A stretch of DNA of 64,000 nucleotides from NCBI RefSeq assembly GCF_006345805.1, contig NC_043015.1:12214001-12278000 (forward strand), given 5' to 3'. Both the position numbers and the translations under genes were made by a program. This stretch comes from Octopus sinensis. Taxonomy: Eukaryota. The notes under the pieces are model-generated. The model saw only the letters and a list, made by a program, of their open reading frames with translations. It made no database searches and was not told where the DNA came from. Shown piece by piece: positions 22,874-59,350 of the stretch (its first letter is position 1; the number at the start of each line of letters is the position of its first letter).

Positions 22874-24165
22874 CGAGGGACGTTCAATAAGTAATGCCCC
22901 TGACCCACTTACAGTTGTTTGATCTAGTTGAAATTTTGCATGTGCAATTATTTATATCTCTATAGATTAAGTGGCAAATTACAGCTCTGAACTAATTGTG
23001 GTTTCTAATTTACAGGTGTTTGAACTGAGTCAAGTGTGAAATGGAGCCTGTTGAGTGTTGAGCAGTGATCCGGTTTTTGTATTTTAAAGGACGCACACCA
23101 CGGGAGACTTTCGATGAAATGAAAGTAACTTATGGTGATGATGCCCCATTATATGACCTTGTAAAACGCTGGCATCATGAATTCAAACATGGTCGGAACT
23201 CTGTGGAAACAGCTCCCAGATCTGGTCGCCCCCTTCTGTCATTGATGAGGCATCTGTCCGTCAAGTTGAGGCTGCTATTTTGGAAGATCGACGCATAGCT
23301 ATTCGCCAAATAGCCCATGAGGTCAAGATTAGTACCGGGTTTGTAGAAACTATCATTCATGACCATTCGCATATGCAAAACGTGTCTGCCAGATGGATTC
23401 CCAGGTTGCTCACGCCTTTCCAGAAGCAAGAACGCGTCGAGTGCTCGAGGATGAATTTGGAGATGTGCCAAGAAGATGAGTCAAAATTTTTCAAAAGACT
23501 GATTACACAGGGTAAAACCTGGGTCCATCACTACGATCCAGAGACCAAAGCCCAGTCAATGCAGTGGAAGCACCGTGACTCACCTCCTCCAAAGAAGGCA
23601 AGGGTGCAGCCCTCCGCTGGCAAGGTCATGCTCACAGTCTTCTGGGACCAGGACGGAGTAGTGATGACAGATTTCCTGGCAAAGGGTACTACAATTACAG
23701 GAGCCTATTATGCTTCCCTTTTGAGTAAATTAAGAGAAGCTATCAAAATCAAGAGGCGGGTCAAGATCAGCAAAGGCATCCTCCTCCTGCAGGACAACGC
23801 TCCTGTCCACAACTCGCTTGTCACCAGATCAGAAGCACAGCCGTGCGGCTATGAACTCCTACCCCATTTCGCCTACTCTCCTGACCTTGCACCCTCTGAT
23901 TTTCACCTCTTCCCAGCCATGAAGTTGTTTTTGAAAGGAAAGCGTTTCCCAGATGATGCAGCCTTGATTTCTGAAGTCACGTCATAGTTGGAGGAACAAG
24001 CTGGGGTCTTCTACAAAAACGGTCTCCAGAGCTGCATCAAACGATGGGAGAAATGCGTAACTCTGGGTGGTTCCTATGTAGAAAAAGACTAATAACTGTG
24101 CCAAGTTTCGTTGCTCTACTGCTATGGAAAGTGGGTCAGAGGCATTACTTATTGAACGACCCTCG
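22874..24165 (+). mobile_element. Full-length mariner transposon (irritans-like) with a transposase pseudogene at 23041-24092
   Basis: About 37-bp TIRs cgagggacgttcaataagtaatgcc..., TA TSD, 1292 bp; WIPRLL, QDNAP, YSPDLAPSD; first catalytic D appears changed (ITQGKTW); stops and a frameshift. Confidence 0.95.
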
Positions 24166-26325: not shown

Positions 26326-27181
26326 TCCCCACCCCCACCAGCATCGCTTGACATCGCTTAGTGGCTCGGCAAAAGAGCACCGACAAAATAAGTACTAGGC
26401 TTACAAAGAATAGGTCCTGGGGTCGATTTGCTCGACTACAGGTGGTGCTCCAGCATGGCCAGTCAAATGACTAAAACAAGTAAAAGAGAGTAAAGAGATT
26501 CAAGACGATGTTTTATCTCTTCACTTTTTATGTTTATTAATTTTTCCTTTCTTTTTTTTTTTTTTGCTTTATTGAGGGTTAAACAACTTTTTTTTAGTTG
26601 AAGGAGACAACCAAAAGTACCGACATTGCTCGCTAAACGGGGTGAGATAGCCCAATTTTTTTATAGGGGTGAGATAAGCAAAATGTATCCTTTTCTGTTT
26701 GACTGCCAGTTTTCAAGATTCAACTTGGAAAACTACATTAATCCACCAAATTCTAAAATGTTCAATAAACTTTGAAATTTCCACAACCGCAGCCAAACAG
26801 AGAAAACCCTATGTATCTATTTCTTTACTACCCACAAGGGGCTAAACACAGAGAGGACAAACAAGGACAGACAAACGGATTAAGTCGATTATATCGACCT
26901 CAGAGCGTAACTGGTACTTATTTAATCGACCCCGAAAGGATGAAAGGCAAAGTCGACCTCGGCGGAATTTGAACTCGGAACGTAACGCATTTCGCCCGGC
27001 GTGCTAACGTTTCTGCCAGTTTGCCGCCTATGTATCTTTTATCTGTTTCAGTCATTCTACTACGGCCATGCAGGTACACCAACTCGCACTACTTTTAGTC
27101 GAAAGCCTGGTAAATATTCTATCGGTCTCGTTTTGCCGAACCGCTAATTTACGGGGACGTAAACAAACCAACAAACCAACA

Positions 27182-28920: not shown

Positions 28921-31900
28921 TCATAAAGGTCAATCTGTCTCAGGCGAGCTGCTAGATAAGAGAGTGAGTAAGAGAAAGTAGAAGTTCGCCATTACCTTCT
29001 GTCGGAGACGCGTAGAGCTTAGATGATTCGCTCATAAACACACACATTCGAACCCGTGATACCTGACCGCGAGTCCGCTTCTCTAACCACTAGGCTATGT
29101 GCCTCCACTAAAAACAGCCAATTAGACTGGATTAAATATATATTTCTTTATTGCCCACAAGGAGCTAAACACAGAGGGGACAAACAAGGACAGATAAAGG
29201 GGTTAAGCGATTACATCGACCCCAGTGCGTAACAGGTACTTTATTTATCGACCCCGAAAGGATGAAAGGCAAAGTCGACCTCGCGGAATTTGAACTCAGA
29301 ACGTAGCAGCAGACGAAATACCTATTTCTTTATTACCCACAAGGGGCTAAACACAGAGGGGACAAACAAGGACAGACATAGGTATTAAGTCGATTATATC
29401 GACCCCAGTGCGTAACTGGTACTTAATTTATCGACCCCGAAAGGATGAAAGGCAAAGTCGACCTCGCGGAATTTGAACTCAGAACGTAGCGGCAGACGAC
29501 GTACCTATTTCTTTACTACCCACAAGGGGCTAAACACAGAGTGGACAAACAAGGACAGACATAGGTATTAAGTTGATTACATCGACCCCAGTGCGTAACT
29601 GGTACTTAATTTATCGACCCCGAAAGGATGAAAGGCAAAGTCGACCTCGGCGGAATTTGAACTCAGAACGTAGCGGCAGACGAAATACCGCTAAGCATTT
29701 CACCCGGCGTGCTAACGTTTCTGCCAGCTGGCCGATTAAATATAGCGAATTTACCTGACCCATATTAAGATAAATACAGTTGCCTCCCTTGCATCCAGTA
29801 TCTAGATTGGCTCAAAAGCTTTTAAAAATCCAATAGGACACTAGATACCAGCTCAATAAGCACGAAAGGCGAATGGCAAAATCATTAGAGTAATAAACAG
29901 AAAGGCACTGTAGTGTCTGGTTATAACTTCTGACGTACACCTGACGTTCAAATGCACCCAAGTTCAATTTTAGCTGTTTGTGTGTCTGTGTTTGTCCCCC
30001 TCACCCAACATTGTTTGACAACCGATGCTGGTGTGTTTACGTCCCCGTCAGCTAGTGGTTTGGCAAAAGAAATCGATGGAATAAGTGCTAGGCTTACAAA
30101 GAATAAGCCCTGGGGTCGATTTGTTCGACTAAAGGTGGTGCTCCAGCAAGGCCACAGTCAAATGACTGAAAACAAATAAAAGAAAAAAAATCACTCACTC
30201 CCATCTTAAATAAGGGTTTATTCTCTGATATACCGTTAATGTATGTGTATATGTGTGTATGTGTGTGTGTATGCGTGTGTGTGTATGTGTGTGTGTGTAT
30301 GTGTGTGTGCGTGCGTGCTAGCATGTGTGTGAGTTTTTACCGTATCCATGAGCATAGCAAACAAATACCAGTATGTTAATACCTTGTGGAGGTGCATGGC
30401 TTAATGGTTAGGATGTTAGATTCATAATCGTAAGATTGTGGTTCCGATCCCTGGACCAAGAGATGAGTAGTGTTATTTAGCGAAACACTACATTTCACAT
30501 TGCTCCAGTCCACTCAGCTAGCAAAATGAGTATTCCTGGGACGGACAGCGGGAAATATATACACCACAGAAACCAGGAAACTAGCTGTATGAGTCTAAAT
30601 GATCAGGAAGGTTTATCCTTAAATACCTTGTAACACAAATTCTTGATTTATTTGAATTATTTCTACCTCTAGCGGGTGTATCATTAATTACCAAATGGCA
30701 ATTATGACCAGCTCCACTTAAGAAGGGGAAATAGATTCAAGAATTTGTAGTGGGACCAATTTTTATTATGGCATAGTGAAAACATTTGATTTATATAGGC
30801 TTTTAGCAGTTGGTTAGCATGTTCTGGCCCTGGTATACTCTTTACTCTCTCTTTTACTCTTTTACTTGTTTCAGTCATTTGACTGCGGCCATGCTGGAGC
30901 ACCACCTTTAATCGAGCAACTCGACCCTTTTGTAAGCCCAGTACTTATTCTATCGGTCTCTTTTGCCGAACCGCTAAGTAACGGGGACATAAACACACCA
31001 GCATCGGTTATCAAGCAATGCTAGGGGGACAAACACAAACACACAAACACACACACGCATATATATATACATATATACGACGGGCTTCTTTCAGTTTCCG
31101 TCTACCAAATGCACTCACAAGGCTTTGGTCGGCCCGAGGCTATAGTAGAAGACACTTGCCCAAGGTGCCACGCAGTGGGACTGAACCCGGAAACAAGCTA
31201 CTTACCACACAGCCACTCCTGCGCCTATCATCATCATCATCATCATTTAGCGTCCGCTTTCCATGCTAGCATGGATTGGACGGTTCAACTGGGGTCTGTG
31301 AAGCCAGAAGGCTGCACCAGGCCCAGTCTGATCTGGCAATGTTTCTACGGCTGGATGCCCTTCCTAACACCAACCACTCCGTGAGTGTAGTGGGTGCTTT
31401 TTATGTGCCAGATGGGGCTGGCAAATGGCCATGGTTGGATGGTGCTTTTTATGTGCCACCGGCACTGGGGCCAGGCGAGGCTGGCAACGGCCATGATCGG
31501 TTGGTGCTTTTTACGTGCCACCGGCACAGAGGCCTGTCGGGGGGGCGCTGGCAACGGCCACATTAGGATAGTTCGCTTAGGTGCCATCGGCACTGGTATC
31601 ACAGCTACAATTTCCATTGATGTTGATCGATTTCGATTTTGATTCTGATTCTCACTTGCCTCAACAGGTCTTCACAAGTAGAGTTTTGTGTCCCAAGAAG
31701 GAAAGGTATGCATAAGTGGACAGGCTACATCCCAGGGTTCCAATGAGTCATGAAGAAACAGTGGAAAGAAATACAAGAAAACAAGTTGCAATTAACTATT
31801 ATGTTTTATTCAACCACTAAAGGAATTGGTACAGGAACTGTGGGTACATTGTGAATGATACTAGTTGAAGAAAATATATATATTTGTTTCTCAATCAGTT

Positions 31901-32919: not shown

Positions 32920-35510
32920 ATAAATCTGTGGATGGTGCAAAGTCCCCTCTTAACCCAAAGTAATGTCGTGGTGGAACAATGTAGTTGACAGGGTCATTAG
33001 GGAAAAGAAACAGGCATGGAGGTACTGGAAGAATGGCGGTAGCAGGGAATTGTATCAGACTGCCACAAGGGAAGCTAGGAGACAGGTTTATTTAGCCAGA
33101 GGAGAAGCATATAAGAAAAAATTTGCCAATGTCCTGCATTGTGAGGACCGAAAACTTGAGGTGTTTCGTGTTGCAAGACAGTGCATGAGAGAGAATTGTG
33201 ATGACATAGGAGAGAAATGTGTCTGCATGTATGACAGTTCACTTGTATTTAATGAGGCTGCAAGGAGTGAGACTTGGAGACGTCCATATGAAAGGTTTCT
33301 AAATGAAGAGAATGAATGGGAGAAAGAGAGTTTGCCAAATGTTGAACCAACAGAGGGACCAGCTATCTGAATTGAGAGTACCTTGGTAGATAAAGCAATT
33401 AAGGGTATGAAGACAGGGAAAGCCTCTGGCCCATCAGCAATCACCACAGAGATACTTAAGATATCTGACAGTGTCGGCTATAGTCTAGTCACCCATATAG
33501 TCAACTAGGTGATACATGGAATCATACCCAATGACCAGTGTAGACACCTGCTACAAAGGTAAAAGTGACACATTAGATACAAATAATTACAGAGGTATCA
33601 AGTTGTTGGATCAAGTAATGAAAGTCATAGCCCAACTAATTAGAGAGAGAGTTAGTTTAGATGAGATGCAGTTTGGGTTTGTGCCAGGGAAAACACCACT
33701 GATGCTATATTTCTGGTAAGACAGCTGCAGGAGAAATACCTAGCCAAAGATAAACCTCCGTACATGGCTTTCATTGGCATGGAGAAAGCCTTTGACAGGG
33801 TTCTCTGATCACTTATCTGGTGGTCAATGAGGAAACTAGGGATAGATGAATGGTTAGTGAGGGCTGTACAAGCCATGTACAGGGATGCTGTCAGTAAGGT
33901 GATGGTTGGCAACGAGTACAGTGACAAATACCAGGTAGGGGTAGAGGTCCACCAAGGATCAGTCCTCAGCCCATCTTATTCATCATAGTCCTCCAGGCAA
34001 TAACAGAGGAATTCAAGACAAGGGTGCCCCTGGGAGTTTCTCTATTATAATGACCTTGCTCTAATTGCTGAGTCCCTATCAGAACTAGAGGAGAAGTTTC
34101 AGGTGTGGAAGCAAGGATTAGAATCGAAGGGCCTTAGAGTCAACCTAGCAAAAACCAAAGTCTTAATAAGTAGGAAGGCAGACAAACCACAAATCCCTTC
34201 AGGTAGATGGCCCTGCTCAATCTGTAGCAAAGGCATAGGTAGAAACTCCATAAGATGTACCCAATGTAAGCTATGGACACATACAAGGTGCAGCAATATC
34301 AAAGGAAGGCTAACTGGGAAGATAGTTTTTGTGTGTGGCAAATGCTCAGGAGCAACAAACACTGAAAATGTGCAGAGAAAAGCTTCCATCACATTCCAGG
34401 GGGAAAAACAAGTAGTTGATAGCTTCTGTTACCTAGGTGACCAAGTCAGTAGCGGGGGTGGATGCTCTAAAAGTGTAGCTGCTAGAGTAAGGATAGCCTG
34501 GGCAAAGTTCAGAGAGCTCCTACCTTTGCTGACAAAGGGCTTCTCAATCAGAGTAAAAGATAGATTGTATGACGCATGTGTGTGAACAGCCACGCTACAT
34601 GGCAGTGAAACATGGGCCATGACTGCTGAGGACATGCGTAAACTTGCAAGGAATGAAGCCAGTATGCTCCACTGGATGTGTAATGTCAGTGTGCATACAC
34701 GACAGTGTAACTGCCCTGAGAGAAAAGTTGGACTTAAGAAGCATCAGATGTGGTGTGCAAGAGAGATGACTGCGATGGTATGGTCATATGTTGTAAATGG
34801 ATGAGGACAGCTGTGTGAAAAAGTGTCACACCTTAGCAGTTGAGGGAACCTGTGGAAGAGGTGGTGAAGCACTATCTTCGAACATTGGGCCTCACAAAGG
34901 CAATGGCAAGTGATAGAGAGCTTTGGAGATATGCTGTGCTTGAGAAAACCCAGCAAACCAAGTGAGATCATAACCATGGTCTATGCCAGTGCTGTATAAC
35001 CAGCCCATCTAAAAGTACCCTTCAATCATTGGGCAATAAACTATACTTGCGAAAACCTGTTGAGGCAAGTGAAATCATTGTCATGGCAGATGACAGTACC
35101 GCCTGATTGGCACCCATGCCAGTGGAACATTTAAAGCACCATTTGAGCATGATCGTTGCCAGGGCCGCTGACTGGCTCCCGTGCCAGTGGCACATAAAAA
35201 AGCACCATTCAAGCATGGTCGTTGCCAGTGCCAACAGACTGGCTCCTGTGCAGGTGGCACATAAAAAGCATCATTTGAGTGTGGCCAATGCCAGGACCAC
35301 CTGACTGGCCCTCATGCTGGTGGCACGTAAAAGCACCCACTACACTCTCGGAGTGGTTGGCCTTAGGAAGGGGATCCAGGTGTAGAAACTTTGCCAGATC
35401 AGATAAGAAACTGGTGCAGCCTTCTGGTTCGCCAGCCCTCAGTCAAACCGTCCAACCCATGCCAGCATGGAAAACAGAAGTTAAACGATGATGATGATGA
35501 TGATGATATA
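32920..35510 (+). mobile_element. RTE-clade LINE, 5'-truncated and degenerate, with a repeat-array 3' tail ending in (GAT)n
   Basis: RT motifs (NYRGIKLL, QFGFVPG, HQGSVLSP, GLRVNLAKTKV, zinc-finger-like WPCSICSKG, FCYLGD); tail with repeated TGGCACGTAAAAAGCACC units. Confidence 0.88.
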
Positions 35511-38106: not shown

Positions 38107-39707
38107 TACAAAAAGAAAAGTTTCCAGAGAGCAGATTAGCAAACTTCTTAAGCAGCAGTTAACAGGGCAATTGTCAACAACATGTTGCATTCCACTCTGA
38201 AAAGAGCCATTAGAGAACTGATAGGATATAGCAAACCCTTAGCAATAAAAAAAAATATACTTGTGCAGGGAGCTTGTTAGTAGATTATAAGAGACAATTA
38301 GACAATTATATAGAGACTGGATTGCTTCAATGTACAGCAGCATATATTTGGTGGCCTGATTAAATGTCCACCTATTGAAACAGTTCTGAATTGCACATCC
38401 AACATGTCAAATATGTCCTCTCTCATTGGTTCTGTATCTTTTGAGCTATTGCTGCTAAAGCTAAGAGTTGATGGATGTTTCACTAACACTGGAATACTGT
38501 AAAGCCATGGCAGCAATACAAGTGTAAACATTAACCTGGATAAGTCAATAGACTTACAGCAGTCTAACACTCAGAGAAGCAAGTGCAAGCAGGCTAGCAC
38601 TGTAGCTTATAGGACTGAGGGTTCTGAAAAAATTGTTAAGATGCTTGAGGTCAAGTTCAGGCTAGACTGCCAGGTGAATAGGTACTGACCACTTGCTGAA
38701 ATTAACTCCCCACCCCAGAAAATTTCTGGCCTCATGTCTACATCGAAAACGATTGGCCTCCGTGCCGGTGGCACGTAAAAAGCACCATCTGATCATGGCC
38801 GTTTGCCAGCCTCGTCTGGCACCTGTGCCGGTGGCATGTAAAAAGCACCCACTACACTCACAGTGGTTGGCAATAGGAAGGGTATCCAGCCGTAGAAACA
38901 TTGTCAGATCAGACTGGGTCTGGTGCAGCTTTCTGGCTTCCCAGACCCCAGTTACACCGTTCAACCCATGCCAGCATGGAAAGCGGACGTTAAACGATGA
39001 TGATGATGATAAGGAGCTAAGCAGACAGAATCATTAGCACACCAAGCAAAATGCACAGCAGCATTTCATTCATCTTCACGTTCTGAATTCAAATTCCGGC
39101 GAGGTTGACTTCGTCTTTCATCCTTTCAGGATTGATAAAATAAGTACCAGTTGAACACTGGAGTTGATGTAATCAACGTAGTCCCTTCCCCGAAATTACT
39201 GGCCTTGTACCTAACTTTGAAACCCATATTATTATTATTATTATTATATTATTATTATTGATTATGACGTGACCATTTAAAAAACAAAACAACCAAAACA
39301 GAAAAAGGGAAACAAAACCTCAACACTTCCATTTCTTACATTTATTATTAATAATAATCTTTGTTATTATTGTTCTTGTTGATGTCATTTAAGAATTTGA
39401 TGAACATTTCCAGAAGATAGATTTTTTTTTTATATATGTTAATTTTTTTCAATTACATTTTTTTTTTACAGAGATTAATTTTTTATTAATTTATTATGTG
39501 TGAATATATATATATATATACACACATGTGGATGAAAGTATGTGTGCACACATTATATATATAACGTATGTATATATGTGTGTGGGTTCATGTAAGTAAA
39601 TATAAATATTTATAAACATGTATGTAATTATATATCTGTATGACATATTTATACACACCTTCATACATATATGCATTTATATATATATACACACACGCAC
39701 ACACATA

Positions 39708-39759
<52 letters not shown>

Positions 39760-39779
39760 TATGTTGCAGTTTCATTTTT

Positions 39780-40014
39780 TTTTTCTTTTTATCTTCATTA
39801 TTTATTGATCATGTAGAAATAGTTGTCTGTGTGAAATCCAATACATCAGCAGGTGATTCTTGCATGCAGAAGTGTCCAAGGACATCCAGCCAGAGTCTCC
39901 AGCATATGACTGGTTTATACCCTGGCCTTCATTGACTCAGCATACAAAAAGCAAGTGTCAAGGCGCCAAGATGACACACGGTTTTATAAATATATATATA
40001 TAATATATAGGCAG
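39780..40014 (-). other. SELENOT: Selenoprotein T non-coding terminal exon (3' UTR); 3' end approximate
   Basis: Strong acceptor atttcttttctttttttattccag| at 40014; contains the SECIS and an AATAAA at 39801-39806. Confidence 0.8.
39860..39947 (-). promoter_or_regulatory. SECIS element, type II
   Basis: Minus strand reads A-UGAA GGCCAGGGU AU AAA CCAG UCAUAUG CUGG AG ACUCUGGCU GGAU: tandem G.A quartet, 9-bp helix II with 2 GU pairs, unpaired AAA, CCAG/CUGG mini-stem; lower helix UUGUAUGC/GCAUGCAA. Confidence 0.92.
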
Positions 40015-40639: not shown

Positions 40640-41510
40640 AATTTCTGCTGCCAGAAGAGACCAAAGTAGTAATGGAGAAGGATGCATGGAGAGTGTGACA
40701 GCCATAATAAGAAAAGAATGGAGGAAATTCAGAGAGCTGTTACCTCTGTTGGCTACAAAAGGTTTCTCTCTCCAAGTGAAAGGAAGACTGTCTGATGCAA
40801 GTATACAGACAGCAATTCTAGATGGTAGTGACACATGGGCTCTGAACAAAGAGGAAATGTGAAGGTTAGAAAGGAATGGGGCTAGTAAGCTCTGCTGAAT
40901 GCATAATGAAAGTGTACATGTTCGACAGCGTGTTAGTGTATTGAGAGAGAAGTTGGGAATAAGAGGAATTAGTTGCTGTGTGCAAGGGAGAAGACTGCGC
41001 TGGTTTGGTCATGTCATGCAGATGGATGCTGACAGCTCAATAAAGTGCTGATCTCTCAAAGCAGATGGAACATGTAGAAGTGGGAGACCCAGGAAGACAT
41101 GGGACGAAGTACTGGAAGAACGACTTCAGTACACTGAACCTTTCAGATGAGATGAAAAAGGACCAAGATGCCTGGTGCTTTGCTGCATTCAAGAAGACCT
41201 GTACTCTGCGGCAGAAGTGTTAAGACCGGTCCCACTGGTGGTAAGAATTGACCTGCAAGAGTCCTGTGCCAATGCCATGTAAAAGCACCCGTGCAGTACC
41301 ACGTAAAAGCACCTGTGGAGTGTTGTGTAAAAGCACCCATGCAACACCGCATAAAAGCAAGCACTCAGTACACTCTGTAAAGTGGTTGGCGTTAGTAAGG
41401 GCATCCAGCTGTAGAAGCCAAACTGTGTCAAATCAGACTGAAGTCTGGTGCAGCTCCCCAGACCTGGTCAAACCATCCAACCCATGCCAGATGGACAATA
41501 GACATTAAAT
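40640..41510 (+). mobile_element. RTE LINE 3' fragment plus tail
   Basis: Homologous to 34450-35510 (KFRELLPLL, RLRWFGHV); ends in the same tail. Confidence 0.75.
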
Positions 41511-41915: not shown

Positions 41916-41921
41916 TATATG

Positions 41922-41986
<65 letters not shown>

Positions 41987-43093
41987 ATCCAAGCTGGAGA
42001 AGCACATCCACCTGTAACAGCGCAGAATTCACCTCTGCAAGCTAATGTAGCAAGCTTACAGTGCTACCACTATTTACCGTCTGTAGATATGTTGTTTCTA
42101 CCTTGCAGTGCCTGTAAACCTTTGTATGGACTGGATCAGTTTGATTATAAACGCAACAGAATTTTGTTTTGAGATGACACAAACCAACTTTTAGCTTGAT
42201 TGTCTGCTAATTAATGAATATGACAATCTGTCCACATGTGCAAAAACACTCACTGGACATTTTCTCTCAAAGCATTGGACTTAATGACTAGCAGCATATA
42301 TTGTTCCCATACACAACTTGATGTTCTGATTTTTGTCCATACTCTCCAATAGTCACAAGTGTGCTTGTGTAGTTAAGTTTGCTTCCCAAACAAACGGTTA
42401 TGAGTTCAGTCCCACTGAGTGGCACCTTGGGCAAATGTCCTACTTTAGCTCCAGGCCAACCAAAGTCTTACAAGTGAATTTGCTAGAAGGAAACTGAAAA
42501 AAGCCTGTTATAAATATAAATATGTAAGTCTCCTCGTCTCAACATTGAGATCCCATGATAGTTGTGTCACTGTTATAAAAGCAGCATCACTCATTTCTAA
42601 TGTTCTGCAAAACATCTGGCCATAGGGAAATATTACCTCACTTGGAAACAAGTAAGGGTCAGCACAGAAAGAGCATCTGGCCATAGAAAAATCTAAGTCC
42701 ATTTAACCATACATGCACGCATGCAAAAGTGGATGTTAAAATGATGAAAGTGAACTTGGCTCAACCTAAGCCTTGTGTGTAAACATGGATAGATAGAAAC
42801 TGTGTAGAAGCCTGCTAGTATAGACTGTATTCATAATTCAAAGGTGTAGCCTTGTTACACATTATGCCTTGCTGAATCTACCTTTATACACATATATTCT
42901 TTTATTCTTTTGTTTGTCATTTGATTGCAGCCATGCTGGAGCACCACCTTTAGTCAAACAAACTGAACCCAGAACTTATTCTTTGTAAGCCTAGTACTTA
43001 TTTTATAGGTCTCTTTTGCCAAACCGCTAAGTTACGGTGATGTAAACACACCAACATCGGTTGTCAAGTGATGGTGGTGGGGAGGAACAAAAA

Positions 43094-43124
<31 letters not shown>

Positions 43125-43850
43125 ACAGGCTTCTTTCAGTTTCCGTCTACCAAATCCACTCACAAGGCTTTGGTTGGCCCGAAGCTATTGTAAAAGACAC
43201 TTAACCAAGATGCCATGTGGTAGACTAAACCCAGAACCATGTGGTTGAGAAGCAAGCTTCTTACCACATATATCAAAAGGGTACATATATCTATGGAATA
43301 CTCACTAACTCAATAAGCAGGTAATCAAGTTAATCAAACAACCGAAGACTTACCTAATCAGAAAGTCTAACCAAGATTCATACATGAATTACCTAAACAT
43401 CAATACTGCAACAATTGCTGAATAAATACTACACTATATTTGCTTACATGAAATAACAACATCCATTTATAGAGAATCATTAGAGCTCGTTGAAGATTTC
43501 AATTTTATTTCATGTTTTTTTTTTTTCGTTTTCAATTTTCCCTCTAATGATGAAATTTGAATTCATCATCATCATCCTTTAACGTCCATTGTCCATGCTG
43601 GCATGGGTCAGACAGTTTGATTGGGCAGACATGCTGGAAGGCTGCGCCAGAATCCAGTCTGATTTGGCATGGTTTTCTATGGCTGGATGCACTTCCTAAT
43701 GCCAACCACTCCGGGAGTGTAATGAGTGCTTTTACATGCCAGCAGTACAGGTGCCATTTGCGTGACACTGGTATCTGTCACAACTGCAATTTTGCTCAGC
43801 TTGATGGGTCTTCTTCTCAAGCACAACATAATGCCAAAGGTCTTGTCATT

Positions 43851-44085
43851 GCCTCCATAAGGTCCAACACTTGAAAGGAGCTCAGCCACTTTGCCTCCAT
43901 GAGGCCCAATGTTCAAAAGGAACTCCAACCACTTCACTACCGTGAGCCCAACACGTAAAAGAAACTCAGCCACTCTACCTCCATGAGGCTCAACACTCGA
44001 AAGGTACTCAGCCACTTTGCCTTCGTCAGGTCCAATGCTCGAAAGCCACTCGGCCGCTTTGCCTCAATGAGGCCCAACATTCAGA
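43851..44085. repeat. Degenerate minisatellite, about 42-bp unit, about 6 copies
   Basis: Unit like GCCTCCATGAGGCCCAACACTCGAAAGGAACTCAGCCACTTT. Confidence 0.75.
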
Positions 44086-44500: not shown

Positions 44501-44532
44501 CTAGAGAGTCGTTTCTTACCTTGAGATAGAAA

Positions 44533-50326: not shown

Positions 50327-50328
50327 TG

Positions 50329-50369
<41 letters not shown>

Positions 50370-51145
50370 ACACACACACACACATACATATTAAAGCTCT
50401 CGACACTTAGTCTAAAGTGATCACTATCATATATTCCCAACTCAGGCAAGGGAGTATTTCGGTCTTGTGACTTGCAAGGCAATAACAATAATGCTGGCAC
50501 CATGAGAAAAAAGCACTCAGTACAGTCTTAAAGTGGTTGAAGTTAGGAAGAACATTGAGCTGCAGAATCTATATCGAAAGTAAAACACTGGAGCAAGACA
50601 TAGTCCTCTAAACCCATTGGAGCCTATCTAACCATCCAACCCATGCCAGCACAGAAAGCAGACATAAAAAAATGTTGCTGATAAATATGTTTCTTGCATG
50701 CAGTGCACAAATGAATAAATAAATATATATCTACATATATTTATAGGAGCAGGAATGGCTGGGTGCTAAGAAGCTTGCTTCCTAATCACATGGTTCAAGG
50801 TTCAATCTCAGGGCATGGCACCTCGAACTACTGTCTTCTACTGTAGCCTTGGGTTGACCAAAGCATTGTGAGTGGATTTGGTAGATGGAAACCAAAAGAT
50901 GATCATTGCGTATGTGCGTCCCCCCCCCGTCCCCACGACCACTTGACAACCAGTATTGGTGTAACTATGTTGTCCCCATAACTTAACAGTTTGGCTAAAG
51001 AGACCAACAGAATAAGTATCAGGCTTAATAATAAAAAAAAAAGTACTGGGATCAATTCATTCTCCTAAAAATTCTTCAAAGCAATACCCTAGCATGGCCA
51101 CAGTCTAATGACTTAAACAAGTAAAAGATAAAATGTGTATGTGTG

Positions 51146-51263
<118 letters not shown>

Positions 51264-51333
51264 TAGGGAATAAATCCAAATTTACAGGGAAAAAATCAGA
51301 TTTAGGATTAAATCCAATTTTATAGTAAAATAT

Positions 51334-51534: not shown

Positions 51535-53419
51535 TTTGAGGTAGATTTTCTAGTTGGATGCCCTTCGTCATGCTAGCAAGTTTAGAATTCTCCATGGCCA
51601 GACAAGTTCTTGCAGAATATTGGAAATGAATGACATTGCTTATACGTGTGATAATCATTTACAACCTTCACGTAATGTCAAGACAAGGCATCACACACAC
51701 ACACAGAATGGGCTTCTTTCAATTTGTCTACTAAATCAGCTAACAAAGCTTTGTTCAGCTCAGGGCTATAACAGATGACATTAGCCCAAGGTACTATGCT
51801 CTGAACATGATTAGGAAGCCAAAAGTTTCTTTTAAAAATTTTTTGATTAATCTAAATGAAATTAAATAGAGATTCTATTAATTTTGTTATGAAGAATAAA
51901 ACTTGGCTCTATATGAGTTTTATTGTTCATAACATAATATTAATAAAATTTCAATTATTTAATTTCTTGTAACTTGATCTAAAAATTAAATTTATGTTTT
52001 TTTTTTTTTTATGTATTTATTTGATAAATAGTAAGTATGCAACAAAGAAAGAGTGATATAGTATAATTAATACCAATTTATTCACTGCTGAATGCACAGT
52101 AACCAATTTTGGATAGAAAGAAAACATTTTAACCCAGTATTTCTCAATCATTTTTTACTCTTTGAACCCCTTTGATACCTATTTTATTTGGGTGAACCCC
52201 AATAGCCAATCAATGTTTTAAAAAATCCTCTGTACTTTCATAATTAGATATTATTAGGAATTGTATAAAAAAAGAATTGTTAAAATATTTTGTGTATTGT
52301 AAGAGTAAAACCAATTTATTGCTAACAGATAATAACAAAATCTTATGTAGACCCCCAAAGATCATAGTTTGAACCCTTTCAATACCACATATCCATTGAA
52401 ATACACATTTCAATTACTTTTGAAAATAAGGAAGAATTTAGTAAAATAATTTTGTCATTAAGCAGGTGTCTGGAATATAATAAATTAGCATAAATTTTGA
52501 TGGAAGGTTTTAACTAAGATCATTTTAAAATGGGAAGTTTGTATCATAGAACCAGGGGTGATTTCAGACAGTTTGGTATCGAAAGAGTTAAAAGAAAAAT
52601 AAACGCAATTTCACAATGCTATAACCTACAAATCTAAATACGCCTTTTTTCTTTACTATGCATCCTAGGTGTGCTAAGTAAAAGGGTTGGCATCAGGAAG
52701 GGCAACTGGCCATAAAATAATTCTTCAAAATGTTTTGTGCAGCTTATGGCAGGTATGGAAATGTAGACAATGATGTAAAGAAATATGTAACAATTATTTT
52801 TAAGTCAAACGAATATATTCAACTGAACAAAAAAAAAATAATTTTTACATTGATACAAATTCAAAAAGTTAATGTAGATTCAATTTCTTAAATGGATTTT
52901 AAAATTTCCTAATTTTACAGTTTTTTAGCATTTATCTTTTGTTTCATTCAGTGAACTGCAGCTATGCTGGGCCCAGCCTTGAAGGATTTAGTCAAGCAAA
53001 TCAACCCCCAGGACTTATTTTTTAAAGCCTAGTACTTATTCCATCTGTCCTGGAACCACTCAGTTATGGGGTCATAAATCAACACCATTGTCAAATGAGG
53101 GACAAACACAGAGATATATCTATACAAACACCTACACACATACAGGCTTCTTTCAGTTTCCATTTACCAAATCCACACACAAGGCTTTGGTTGGCCTGGA
53201 GCTATAGTAGAAGATACTTGCCCAAGGTATCACACAGTGGGACTGAACCCAAAACCGTGTGGTTGGGAAACAAACTTCTTACCACACAGCAACACTTGTG
53301 CCTATGTGGACTTTTGTTTTGGAGCAACCACTGTATTTTAAACATATGCTAGCATAATTTGTTGCATAGAGAAACATAGATTCTGTTCAGAGTAAGTAAG
53401 AAACATCCATACATGATGG

Positions 53420-55570: not shown

Positions 55571-57385
55571 AAATGTTTAAAATACAGCACCAGGCATTTC
55601 ACGTTATATGCTTGGCATTCAGTTTACAACTGGTAGTTGCAGACATAAACAAGCTGGCACGATGATGGCAATATTCCTGACAATGATTTTCAAAAGTACC
55701 ATTAGCTTTGATTATCTGTTATTCTCTTTTACTCGTTTCAGTCATTTGACTGCGGTCATGCTGGAGCACTGCCTTTAGTGGAGCAAATCGACCCCAGGAC
55801 TTATTCTTTGTAAGCCCAGTACTTATTCCATCGGTCTCTTTTGTTGAACCGCTAAGTTACAGGGGACGTAAACACACCAGCATCGGTTGTCAAGCGATGT
55901 TGGGAGGACAAACACAGACACACAAACATATACACACACACAGTATATATATATATATATATACATGACGGGCTTCTTTCAGTTTCCGTCTACCAAATCT
56001 ACTCAAAAGGCTTTGCTCGGCCCGAATCTATAGTAGAAGACATTTGCCCGAGGTGCCATGCAGCAGGACTGAACCCGGAGCTATGTTGTTGGTAAGCAAG
56101 CTACTTACAACACAGCCACCCTGTGCCTATAATTCTAGATAATATTATTTCATAAGTTTAGTGATGGCATGTAACTTAATGGTTAGGATATTTGGCTTAC
56201 ACTCATAGGATCAGACATTCAATTCCCAGCAGCATGATACTTTATTTCACAAAGCTCCAGTCCACTCAACTGGCACAATTGAATAGCACCCATATTTCAA
56301 AGGGCCAGCCATGCCACATTCTGTGTCATGCTGAATCTCCCCGAGAACTAAATTATGGTCACGCGTGTCTGTGGAGTCCTTAGCCACTTGCAAGTTACTT
56401 TTGCCAGCAAGCAGTTCTATTGAGCAGATCAACTGGATCACTCATCACCATAACCAGTGGAGTGCCAGTCAGATTTCATAAGTTTATTGTAGTAATAATA
56501 TATACCATTTCCCTTCAAATCCAACCAACAAAGTTATCTATCTTCCTCCTTTATCCATGTTGTCTGTCTGTCTGTCTCACTCCTTCCAGGACTGACATCC
56601 TTCTGCTCCAGAACATCAACTCCCAAGAATTCCGTCCTCATCTATGTTTTTCTTACAAATTTCAATTTGCTGCTTTTCAATTGCATGAGCTCAAAATCCA
56701 GAAAGAATCTGTTCAGATCATGAACTTTGTCCCTCCTTCCTAAAACCATCTTGACGCCTCTGTCAGTCAGCACTGACCATGGACCTGCACCAGGAATATT
56801 TTTCACTCAAGTGTATACCTTGGTAAAGTTTCTTCATAGAAGACCAGCAGTTGATGCTACAGGTCTCTCTTCTCAATGCAACTTATGTCCAAGAGAAAAG
56901 CAAGGCCCAATTCAACTTGGCACCATTATCATCATAAGGGAAGTCAGAACACAAAGTGACAGAACAAATACTTCCAAACTCTAACAATTCCTCCAAACCA
57001 TCGCAACAGACTGGTAGTTTATTACATTGAGTTCAGAATGATAAAAAGGATATGGTCAACCTCAGCAAGAGTTTAACTCCCAAGGTTAAAAGCTCAAACA
57101 AATAAATATAGGGATTTTTGCCCCATGCCCTAATAACCCTGCACAAGCTATCGCCTAGCTAAAACTCTTAAAAACAATTATCATGCCTACAAGTATATGC
57201 TGATATTTGAAATGTCTACAGAAATGTGAAATTTTCCACTAAAAAAAAGAATAAAAACGTTCTGTAAAATAGAATCACTCTTCGAACCATGGAAGAAATT
57301 GGTAATATAACAAAAACAATCAGACAACCTGGAAGTCATGGAATTTCCCAGAATGTCGTTCAGATGTTATTTTCGGAATACTTTG

Positions 57386-57767: not shown

Positions 57768-59350
57768 ATACTTCGTCCAGTTCGCTCAGCTCTCGGTTGT
57801 CACTATGATCGTTTCTCTGGACGCTACGTTTGGCACCTCTTTAACTTGTTTGGCAAATTCCTCCTGAACACACTCATATAAAACCCACAATATTACAACC
57901 CTTTAATACTACCCAGTCGCTTTCTCACACGAGAGAACGAAGAGAGAACGTGTGAATGAAAGGCTGAGAGTGTACAGCCCAGCGTTTCCATTACACAAGT
58001 TCAACAAAACATGACATACTTTAAACCTGTTGTCTAAGACATCCGTCTCCGTCACCACCACCAGGATAACTAACTGCACAACTTGCAGAAGAAGAGAGAG
58101 AAGGAAAGAAACATTTGCAGAGGTGGTGGTCTGAAAATGTTACAGCGTTAATGTAGTAATTAGTTTTCGAGTACGTCAGAGCATTCACATACAAAAGACG
58201 ACACAGGGAGCGGAAGTTGTTGGACAGGATGATGTTCGTTTAGTTTCCCCCAATTACTGTAGTTTCCCGTCCTCCTCCAGACACCAATGAACTCTCTCAC
58301 ACACACACAAAACACCCATTCTCCAAACCTCACCAACCAACTGTCAGACACTGTCAGACTCGGCCCTTCCACAGACTGACATTGTCAAATCCTCAACAAT
58401 AAGTAGCGAATACACCTAACATACACATAAAATAAAATGCTTTTACAGAGAGATAGCCAGATGTGTAACGCGTGCACACAATAAGGTCGTTAGCTGTTTA
58501 GTTACATACACACACCGGGAAAGCAAGCAATATGACATACATACGGAAAAAGACGTAGCCAAGTGGCTAACAACAACGCATACAATTTGTGTATTTGTTT
58601 ATATATCGAGCCGTTTGCCCTCATGAGAACCCAATTTCTGTTTGGGCTTGACTCCTTTCTATATATTGTTAAAGGGGAAGAAGAGGGGTCAATTATACAC
58701 ATTTGATTACTTCCGTAAGATAAACAGACAGGGTACAGCCTCGGGTATATCAAGTCGGAAGAGATAAAGAATACGCACACCACCCGTTTCCGGCGTAACC
58801 CTGATCCTAAACACCGGGTGTGCGTATTCTTTACCTTCGCCATCAAGTCTTACTAAATCAGTGATCGCTATTCTTCCCGAACAGTACTGGCTGCGTTGAT
58901 AAAAGCCCATAATTAAAATAAGTTAACAAAACTACCATACAGAGGGTCGATTAAGTACCAGTAATATGCTGAAACCATCTCAATCTACTATTTCCTAGTT
59001 CCATAAATCGGTGGGCCTAAATACCTCTATCAAATATGTATCAGTTGTAACTAGAAAGTTTCAGCGTAATCAATAGGGATGCTAAAAATAGCTGCCAAAT
59101 ATACCCCAAATCACGTCTTTACAATCTCAGAAAAGAGGCCACAATAAATAAAGTGGTCCTGGGTTCTCTTGCACGACGGCATGATTCTGGTTAGAATGTC
59201 TTTGATCGTAGATATGTTCAATCAAGACTGAGCCGAGGTTAAACAACAATACCACTAACGTACTAGACTAGACTCAATTTAATCTTAAACTGTTTACCAA
59301 ACTTCAATAGGTTATAATACAGTTCTATATTTAAGAGATGAGGGATTATT

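Follow-up and report, generated by a model that had tools for sequence, protein, structure and literature searches.

The minus strand of the 64 kb window, by which we mean the whole stretch of DNA analyzed here, carries a gene for selenoprotein T (SELENOT), a selenoprotein of the Rdx family. Its coding exons were mapped by tblastn with SelT proteins and by blastn with SelT mRNAs from related species. The alignment edges of three coding exons coincide exactly with GT/AG sites, and the exons are colinear with both the proteins and the mRNAs. Coding exon 2 (49931-49694, minus strand, as for all following features of the gene) begins with a T, the third position of the CxxU motif's Cys codon, and ends at the donor AAG|GTAAGT. 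At 49924-49922 lies an in-frame UGA that aligns to the Sec of SelT relatives, and the same codon is also TGA in the related SelT mRNAs. Coding exon 3, IYSCMMVFFLSNALEGHMISTGAFEVTFN, spans 48621-48534 and ends in phase 1, with three related mRNAs (L001-L003) aligning at 48623-48534. The last coding exon, exon 4 (DVPVWSKLENGRIPSPSEMFQIIDNHMRLHKDDLA), was placed at 44639-44520 by the tblastn and blastn edges; it contains the stop codon TAA at 44535-44533, after which 13 nt of 3'UTR (44532-44520) lead to the donor AAG|GTAAGA. Joined together, exons 2-4 translate as (C)YS-U-GYRKVFEQ...FEVTFNDVPVWSKLENGRIPSPSEMFQIIDNHMRLHKDDLA-stop. The redox motif, which reads C-Y-S-U in relatives, is present as x-Y-S-U, since intron 1 interrupts its first codon, of which the final T alone lies within the window.

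The assignment to selenoprotein T is well supported by a Pfam Rdx (PF10262) match of 65.7 bits, compared to a cut-off of 22.6, and both the profile and the orthologues match over the whole mature region. The best homologues are transcript-encoded SelT proteins with 83% identity (phmmer, E 5e-70), and the nearest mRNAs are approximately 78% identical in the CDS. Identity to other molluscan SelT proteins amounts to 64% for Lottia, 65% for Nucella and 62% for Lymnaea, and to approximately 55% for mammalian (human) SELENOT; for the mollusc Lottia, SelT is on record as a selenoprotein (PMC3473315). The collections searched contained no protein or transcript with more than 83% identity to the SelT of the window, and the 120 homologues listed include no transcript from the same species as the window, Lottia or Tegillarca.

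Exon 1 would hold the start codon, the signal peptide and the two leading bases of the Cys codon. A search of the 14 kb of the window upstream of exon 2 with the N-termini of five relatives, at E values up to 1000, gave no credible match to it. One candidate at 62377-62291 was rejected, as it has neither an open exon nor a donor, and a match to 'GPKYLYQICISC' at 59013-59048 on the plus strand was taken as chance. With exon 1 not located in the window, the gene is only assumed to be intact.

The surrounding DNA has a G+C content of 33-45% and is rich in microsatellites and interspersed repeats. Among the latter, a SINE-like repeat of approximately 250 nt occurs in at least 17 copies within the 64 kb, on both strands and with 70-86% identity. 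Taking 40480-40225 as the reference copy, other copies lie, e.g., at 25425-25283, 32680-32549, 31088-31195, 43010-43268, 51003-50745, 53124-53290 and 55976-56118; three are located in the 3'UTR intron of the SelT gene discussed below, and others in its coding introns. Two open reading frames on the plus strand gave Pfam matches. The first (23280-23987, 235 aa) matches Transposase_1, a mariner-type partial DDE domain (E 7e-25), and by this match is probably a mariner-like transposon remnant. The second (34103-34585, 160 aa) contains a PHD finger (PF00628, 27.7 bits vs. a cut-off of 24) and may represent an exon of a neighboring gene on the opposite strand. ARAGORN called no tRNA genes in the window. 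Furthermore, sub-threshold Rfam hits to miRNA families (mir-297, mir-1277, mir-466 and others) fall on (TA)n/(CA)n stretches at 39696-39770, 50327-50402 and 51130-51270 and are simple-repeat artefacts. Positions 869-915 of the related SelT mRNA contig L003, at its far 3' end, match an unrelated site at 26513-26565 on the plus strand (81% over 53 nt), probably reflecting a shared repeat or low complexity.

Downstream of the SelT exons and on the same strand, a form 2 SECIS stem-loop is predicted at approximately 39950-39857 by a minimum free energy (MFE) fold, a consensus fold and a covariance model. The 95 nt around the AUGA fold into a long stem (MFE -34 kcal/mol, z -2.7), in which helix 1 pairs 39950-39940 with 39867-39857, the AUGA occupies 39932-39929, and helix 2 pairs 39927-39919 with 39896-39888 (9 bp plus an A.G). 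An AAA internal loop follows at 39916-39914, helix 3 pairs 39913-39909 with 39903-39899 (5 bp), and the 3' GA is found at 39886-39885. The hairpin therefore shows the features of form 2, namely a helix 2 of approximately 9-12 bp, an unpaired AA(A), a short helix 3 and an apical loop, together with the AUGA/GA quartet. AUGA and GA are invariant in all 9 sequences of the two alignments described below, and one A of the AA motif is also invariant across the SelT SECIS alignment. Moreover, a blastn search with the mRNA of a related species gave a match at 39932-39882 (E 2e-7).

The initial annotation had called this element a textbook type II SECIS. While all defining motifs are indeed present, this wording is a slight overstatement with regard to Rfam, as the SECIS_1 model (RF00031) scores the element at 25.3 bits, below the gathering score of 35, with an E value of 0.6 over 28 kb, which lacks significance for a search of tens of kilobases. 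An Rfam search of the window at gathering thresholds gave no matches. The element is the sole SECIS_1 match in 36000-64000 on both strands, and accepted SelT SECIS elements from Lottia (32.4 bits), mammal (34.9 bits) and Tegillarca (35.3 bits) themselves score close to or below this threshold. For the 3 closest mRNAs (L001-L003), SECIS_1 reported nothing at E≤1. Because accepted SelT elements score at or below it, the gathering threshold is insensitive for the SelT subgroup; with SECIS_1 being marginal even for these, a SelT-only model was therefore built. The covariance model is based on an alignment (A2) of 8 SelT SECIS loci from which the window was left out, comprising 5 invertebrate mRNAs (L001, L002, L007, L009 and L010), one mammalian mRNA (L006) and the genomes of Lottia (L004) and Tegillarca (L011). 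Searched against the whole 64 kb on both strands, this model returned a single hit, 39873-39942 on the minus strand, with 48.8 bits (E ~7e-9), the runner-up scoring 13.7 bits.

A second alignment (A1), which includes the window, was folded with RNAalifold and independently predicted an identical helix 2 and helix 3. Across A1, 94.6% of cells are paired, compared to 27-44% in controls in which the 3' partners were slid by 1-3 columns, and 11 of the 14 SECIS base pairs show compensatory changes on both sides across species. Judged by its sequence and covariation, the hairpin is the orthologous SelT SECIS and more than a chance resemblance. The opposite view, that it is a chance or relic SECIS-like sequence, or part of a decayed gene copy without present function, could draw on the missing exon 1 and on the Rfam score under the threshold. 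It is, in our estimate, extremely improbable, given that the three coding exons are open with intact splice sites, that the protein is 83% identical to that of expressed relatives, and that every invariant SECIS position is kept, with compensatory pairing and an AATAAA downstream.

This SECIS lies far from the stop codon in the genome: the distance from the stop to the AUGA is 4,600 nt in the window, compared to 81, 79, 79, 90, 168 and 67 nt in 6 related mRNAs. It would belong to the same mRNA as the SelT exons, and hence to the 3'UTR, only if a predicted 3'UTR intron of 4,505 nt (44519-40015) is spliced. Splicing of the donor at 44520 to an acceptor at 40014 (TTTCTTTTCTTTTTTTTATTCCAG|CTG) would reduce the distance from stop to AUGA to 95 nt. 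The resulting non-coding terminal exon would extend from 40014 to approximately 39775, its 3' end being approximate and set by an AATAAA poly(A) signal at 39806-39801, which is situated approximately 80 nt beyond the 3' GA of the SECIS and precedes an A-rich stretch. The gene has a consensus donor 13 nt past the stop and a consensus acceptor upstream of the SECIS, as in a SELENOT-type split 3'UTR.

Splice-site quality points to the same boundaries. In a census of the minus strand from the stop codon to the SECIS core, the acceptor at 40014 ranked first of 295 AG sites by polypyrimidine content (19/20) and follows the longest AG-free zone (109 nt), and of the 281 GT sites just two match MAG|GTRAGT at 8/9 positions, the donor at 44520 being one of them. 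The interval itself contains three of the SINE-like copies of approximately 250 nt, a (TA)n stretch at 41916-41982 and a 42-nt tandem repeat at 43849-44079 (5.5 copies, ~70% match), as well as three AATAAA/ATTAAA motifs (43509, 42906 and 41722). A 24-nt repeat is also found here, at 41275-41359. Such a repeat content is usual in introns and would sit oddly in a UTR. Another gene within the 4.5 kb as the owner of the SECIS was rejected, as the interval consists of repeats and holds no ORF of 130 aa or more.

It is very improbable that the mRNA lacks a 3'UTR intron and keeps the entire 4.6 kb between stop and SECIS, with the latter acting at long range within a single terminal exon. SECIS elements are generally known to act over kilobase distances, and the genomic gaps of 390 nt in Lottia and 583 nt in Tegillarca would work unspliced as well. 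However, the top acceptor and the joint-top donor of the interval sit exactly at its ends, and an unspliced transcript would include the three AATAAA/ATTAAA signals and many SINE-like repeats. It would also depart from the related mRNAs, as in 6 of 6 the SECIS core lies within 67-168 nt past the stop (67-90 nt in five), and from mammals, in which the homologous intron is spliced according to both the alignment to an ape locus described below and published work (PMC3316567).

A 3'UTR intron with other boundaries, or an extra small non-coding exon within the 4.5 kb, is likewise quite unlikely. The second 8/9 donor at 43354 and several moderate acceptors, e.g., at 40841, would offer the sites for it, and when the UTR between stop and SECIS was globally aligned to L001 and L002 in its spliced and unspliced forms, this AT-rich and diverged stretch did not tell the models apart or place the junction. 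Nevertheless, the 109 nt preceding 40014 are free of AG, and the sole AG between 40014 and the SECIS core would cut helix 1. Furthermore, the spliced distance of 95 nt is within the range of the relatives, and a donor 13 nt past the stop resembles those of Tegillarca, Lottia and apes (22-29 nt). Taken from the splice sites and the stop-to-SECIS distances in related mRNAs, the junction 44520|40014 and the splicing of the 4.5-kb intron are the predicted configuration.

The arrangement was further compared with other SelT genes. Alignment of the mammalian SELENOT mRNA (L006) to a great-ape locus (L005) gave six blocks, corresponding to six exons with the stop in exon 5 and the SECIS in exon 6. 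Exon 5 ends 29 nt past the stop at GTAAGT and is followed by a 496-nt intron, and the SECIS AUGA is located 38 nt into exon 6. Three coding introns occupy the same positions in the window and in ape SELENOT, one interrupting the Cys codon of CxxU, one following ..NK and one lying at N|DVPVW (phase 1), and in both the window and mammalian SELENOT a form 2 SECIS starting with AUGAAGGCC resides wholly in the non-coding last exon. The two genes differ in the distance from the stop to the last junction (13 nt in the window vs. 29 nt in ape), in the offset of the SECIS core within the last exon (82 nt vs. 38 nt) and in the intron, which is 4.5 kb long and repeat-filled in the window and approximately 0.5 kb in ape, i.e., enlarged approximately ninefold by repeats. 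In addition, mammalian SELENOT exons 2 and 3 correspond to one exon in the window, as they do in Tegillarca.

The SelT genes of Lottia gigantea and Tegillarca granosa, the proteins of which are 59-64% identical to that of the window, have the same coding exon structure, with the SECIS hundreds of nucleotides beyond the stop; here, too, splicing is predicted. For Tegillarca, a candidate donor (AAG|GTATAC) lies 23 nt past the stop and a candidate acceptor (TTTTAG|A) 61 nt before the AUGA, so that removal of a candidate intron of 507 nt would shorten the genomic gap of 583 nt between stop and SECIS to a predicted 84 nt. The corresponding candidate sites in Lottia are CAG|GTACTA, 22 nt past the stop, and TTTTTTAG|A, 50 nt before the AUGA, and a candidate intron of 327 nt would reduce the genomic gap of 390 nt to 72 nt. 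Both predicted spliced distances are within the range of the related mRNAs.

A split 3'UTR with the SECIS in the last exon has been reported for mammalian SelT (Mariotti et al. 2012, PMC3316567). Because it has already been described there, the arrangement in the window represents the normal architecture of the gene family. The same study described split 3'UTRs in which the last exon contains the complete SECIS for SelW, SelH, SelV, TXNRD2/TR3 and the five-exon form of rodent MsrB1, and a splice site that abuts the stop codon for SelK (PMC3316567). These genes (SelW, SelH, SelV, TXNRD2/TR3, SelK and MsrB1) resemble the window in their split 3'UTR, a likeness drawn from description and between different proteins.

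Altogether, we consider it highly probable that the locus represents the 3' end of a mollusc-type SELENOT gene, which is spliced from 44520 to 40014, carries its SECIS approximately 95 nt past the stop and has its UGA read as Sec. The initial annotation had proposed a separate 3'UTR exon for the SECIS, and this reading is upheld by the identity of the gene, the orthology of the SECIS, the splice sites and the comparison with the mRNAs of relatives and the ape locus, with the junction itself as a prediction. Its more detailed placements agree with our mapping as well: the stop is 13 nt upstream of the last junction, the SECIS lies approximately 80 nt into the terminal exon (the AUGA being 82 nt in), the Sec-UGA is upstream of three junctions (49694|48621, 48534|44639 and 44520|40014), and all coordinates were correct on the minus strand.

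The kink-turn core of SECIS elements binds SBP2, and SBP2 together with eEFSec and Sec-tRNA recodes an upstream UGA. In the proposed mechanism for this gene, the donor 13 nt after the stop (44520) would be spliced to the acceptor at 40014, which would remove the repeat-inflated 4.5-kb intron and bring the form 2 SECIS to approximately 95 nt downstream of the stop. The predicted SECIS, which has an AUGA/GA kink-turn core and an AAA loop, would then recruit a SECIS-binding protein and the Sec-specific elongation factor, and the in-frame UGA at 49924-49922 would be decoded as selenocysteine within the CxxU redox motif. Binding of SBP2 by the SECIS of the window is likewise a prediction.

The position of the junctions also bears on nonsense-mediated decay (NMD). 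According to the mammalian rule, decay is triggered when translation terminates more than 50-55 nt ahead of an exon junction (PMC4105750), and this rule is the published basis for the predicted NMD sensitivity of those mammalian selenoprotein mRNAs that have their Sec codon in exon 2 or 3. In the window, the UGA precedes three junctions, the first of them by 228 nt, and the natural stop is only 13 nt from the last one. If the rule applies in this mollusc-like animal, the natural stop would be exempt from NMD and the UGA would become a target when Sec decoding fails, in line with what the initial annotation had proposed. The distances from stop to junction are 13, 22, 23 and 29 nt in the four genomes, all under the NMD threshold of 50-55 nt. 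These short distances are as compatible with constraint as with the simple persistence of an ancient intron position.

With respect to annotation, the analysis yields a model that covers four of the gene's exons, including a non-coding last one, along with the Sec codon, the SECIS and the poly(A) signal; selenoproteins of this kind are usually cut short or wrongly joined at the UGA by automatic pipelines. It is plausible that an annotation of this locus would miss the terminal exon, as had been anticipated. Several deposited SelT protein models are mis-built at the Sec codon: the Lottia model (P0004, locus L004) begins directly after Sec, the Tegillarca model (P0106, locus L011) leaves out the Sec region together with some of exon 2, and the great-ape model (P0118, locus L005) reads 'IWVSS' in the Sec region. 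In Logan gene calls for SelT, the TGA was taken as Trp or the start was placed downstream of it.

The window adds a SELENOT orthologue from another lineage, and its arrangement is real but ordinary. It extends the split-3'UTR arrangement of SELENOT to a mollusc-like genome and leaves the understanding of Sec decoding unchanged. The layout with the stop in the penultimate exon and the SECIS in the last exon points to an ancestral state of SELENOT, inherited from the bilaterian ancestor. One may speculate further that the intron between stop and SECIS, which in all four genomes lies fewer than about 30 nt past the stop, dates back to the bilaterian ancestor or earlier and has been kept by selection rather than by inertia, with splicing just upstream of the SECIS aiding the nuclear assembly of SECIS and protein or a selenium-dependent surveillance of the mRNA; we regard this as unlikely. 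If it were true, the presence of such an intron in all Rdx-type selenoprotein genes (SelT, SelW, SelH and SelV) would reflect this function.
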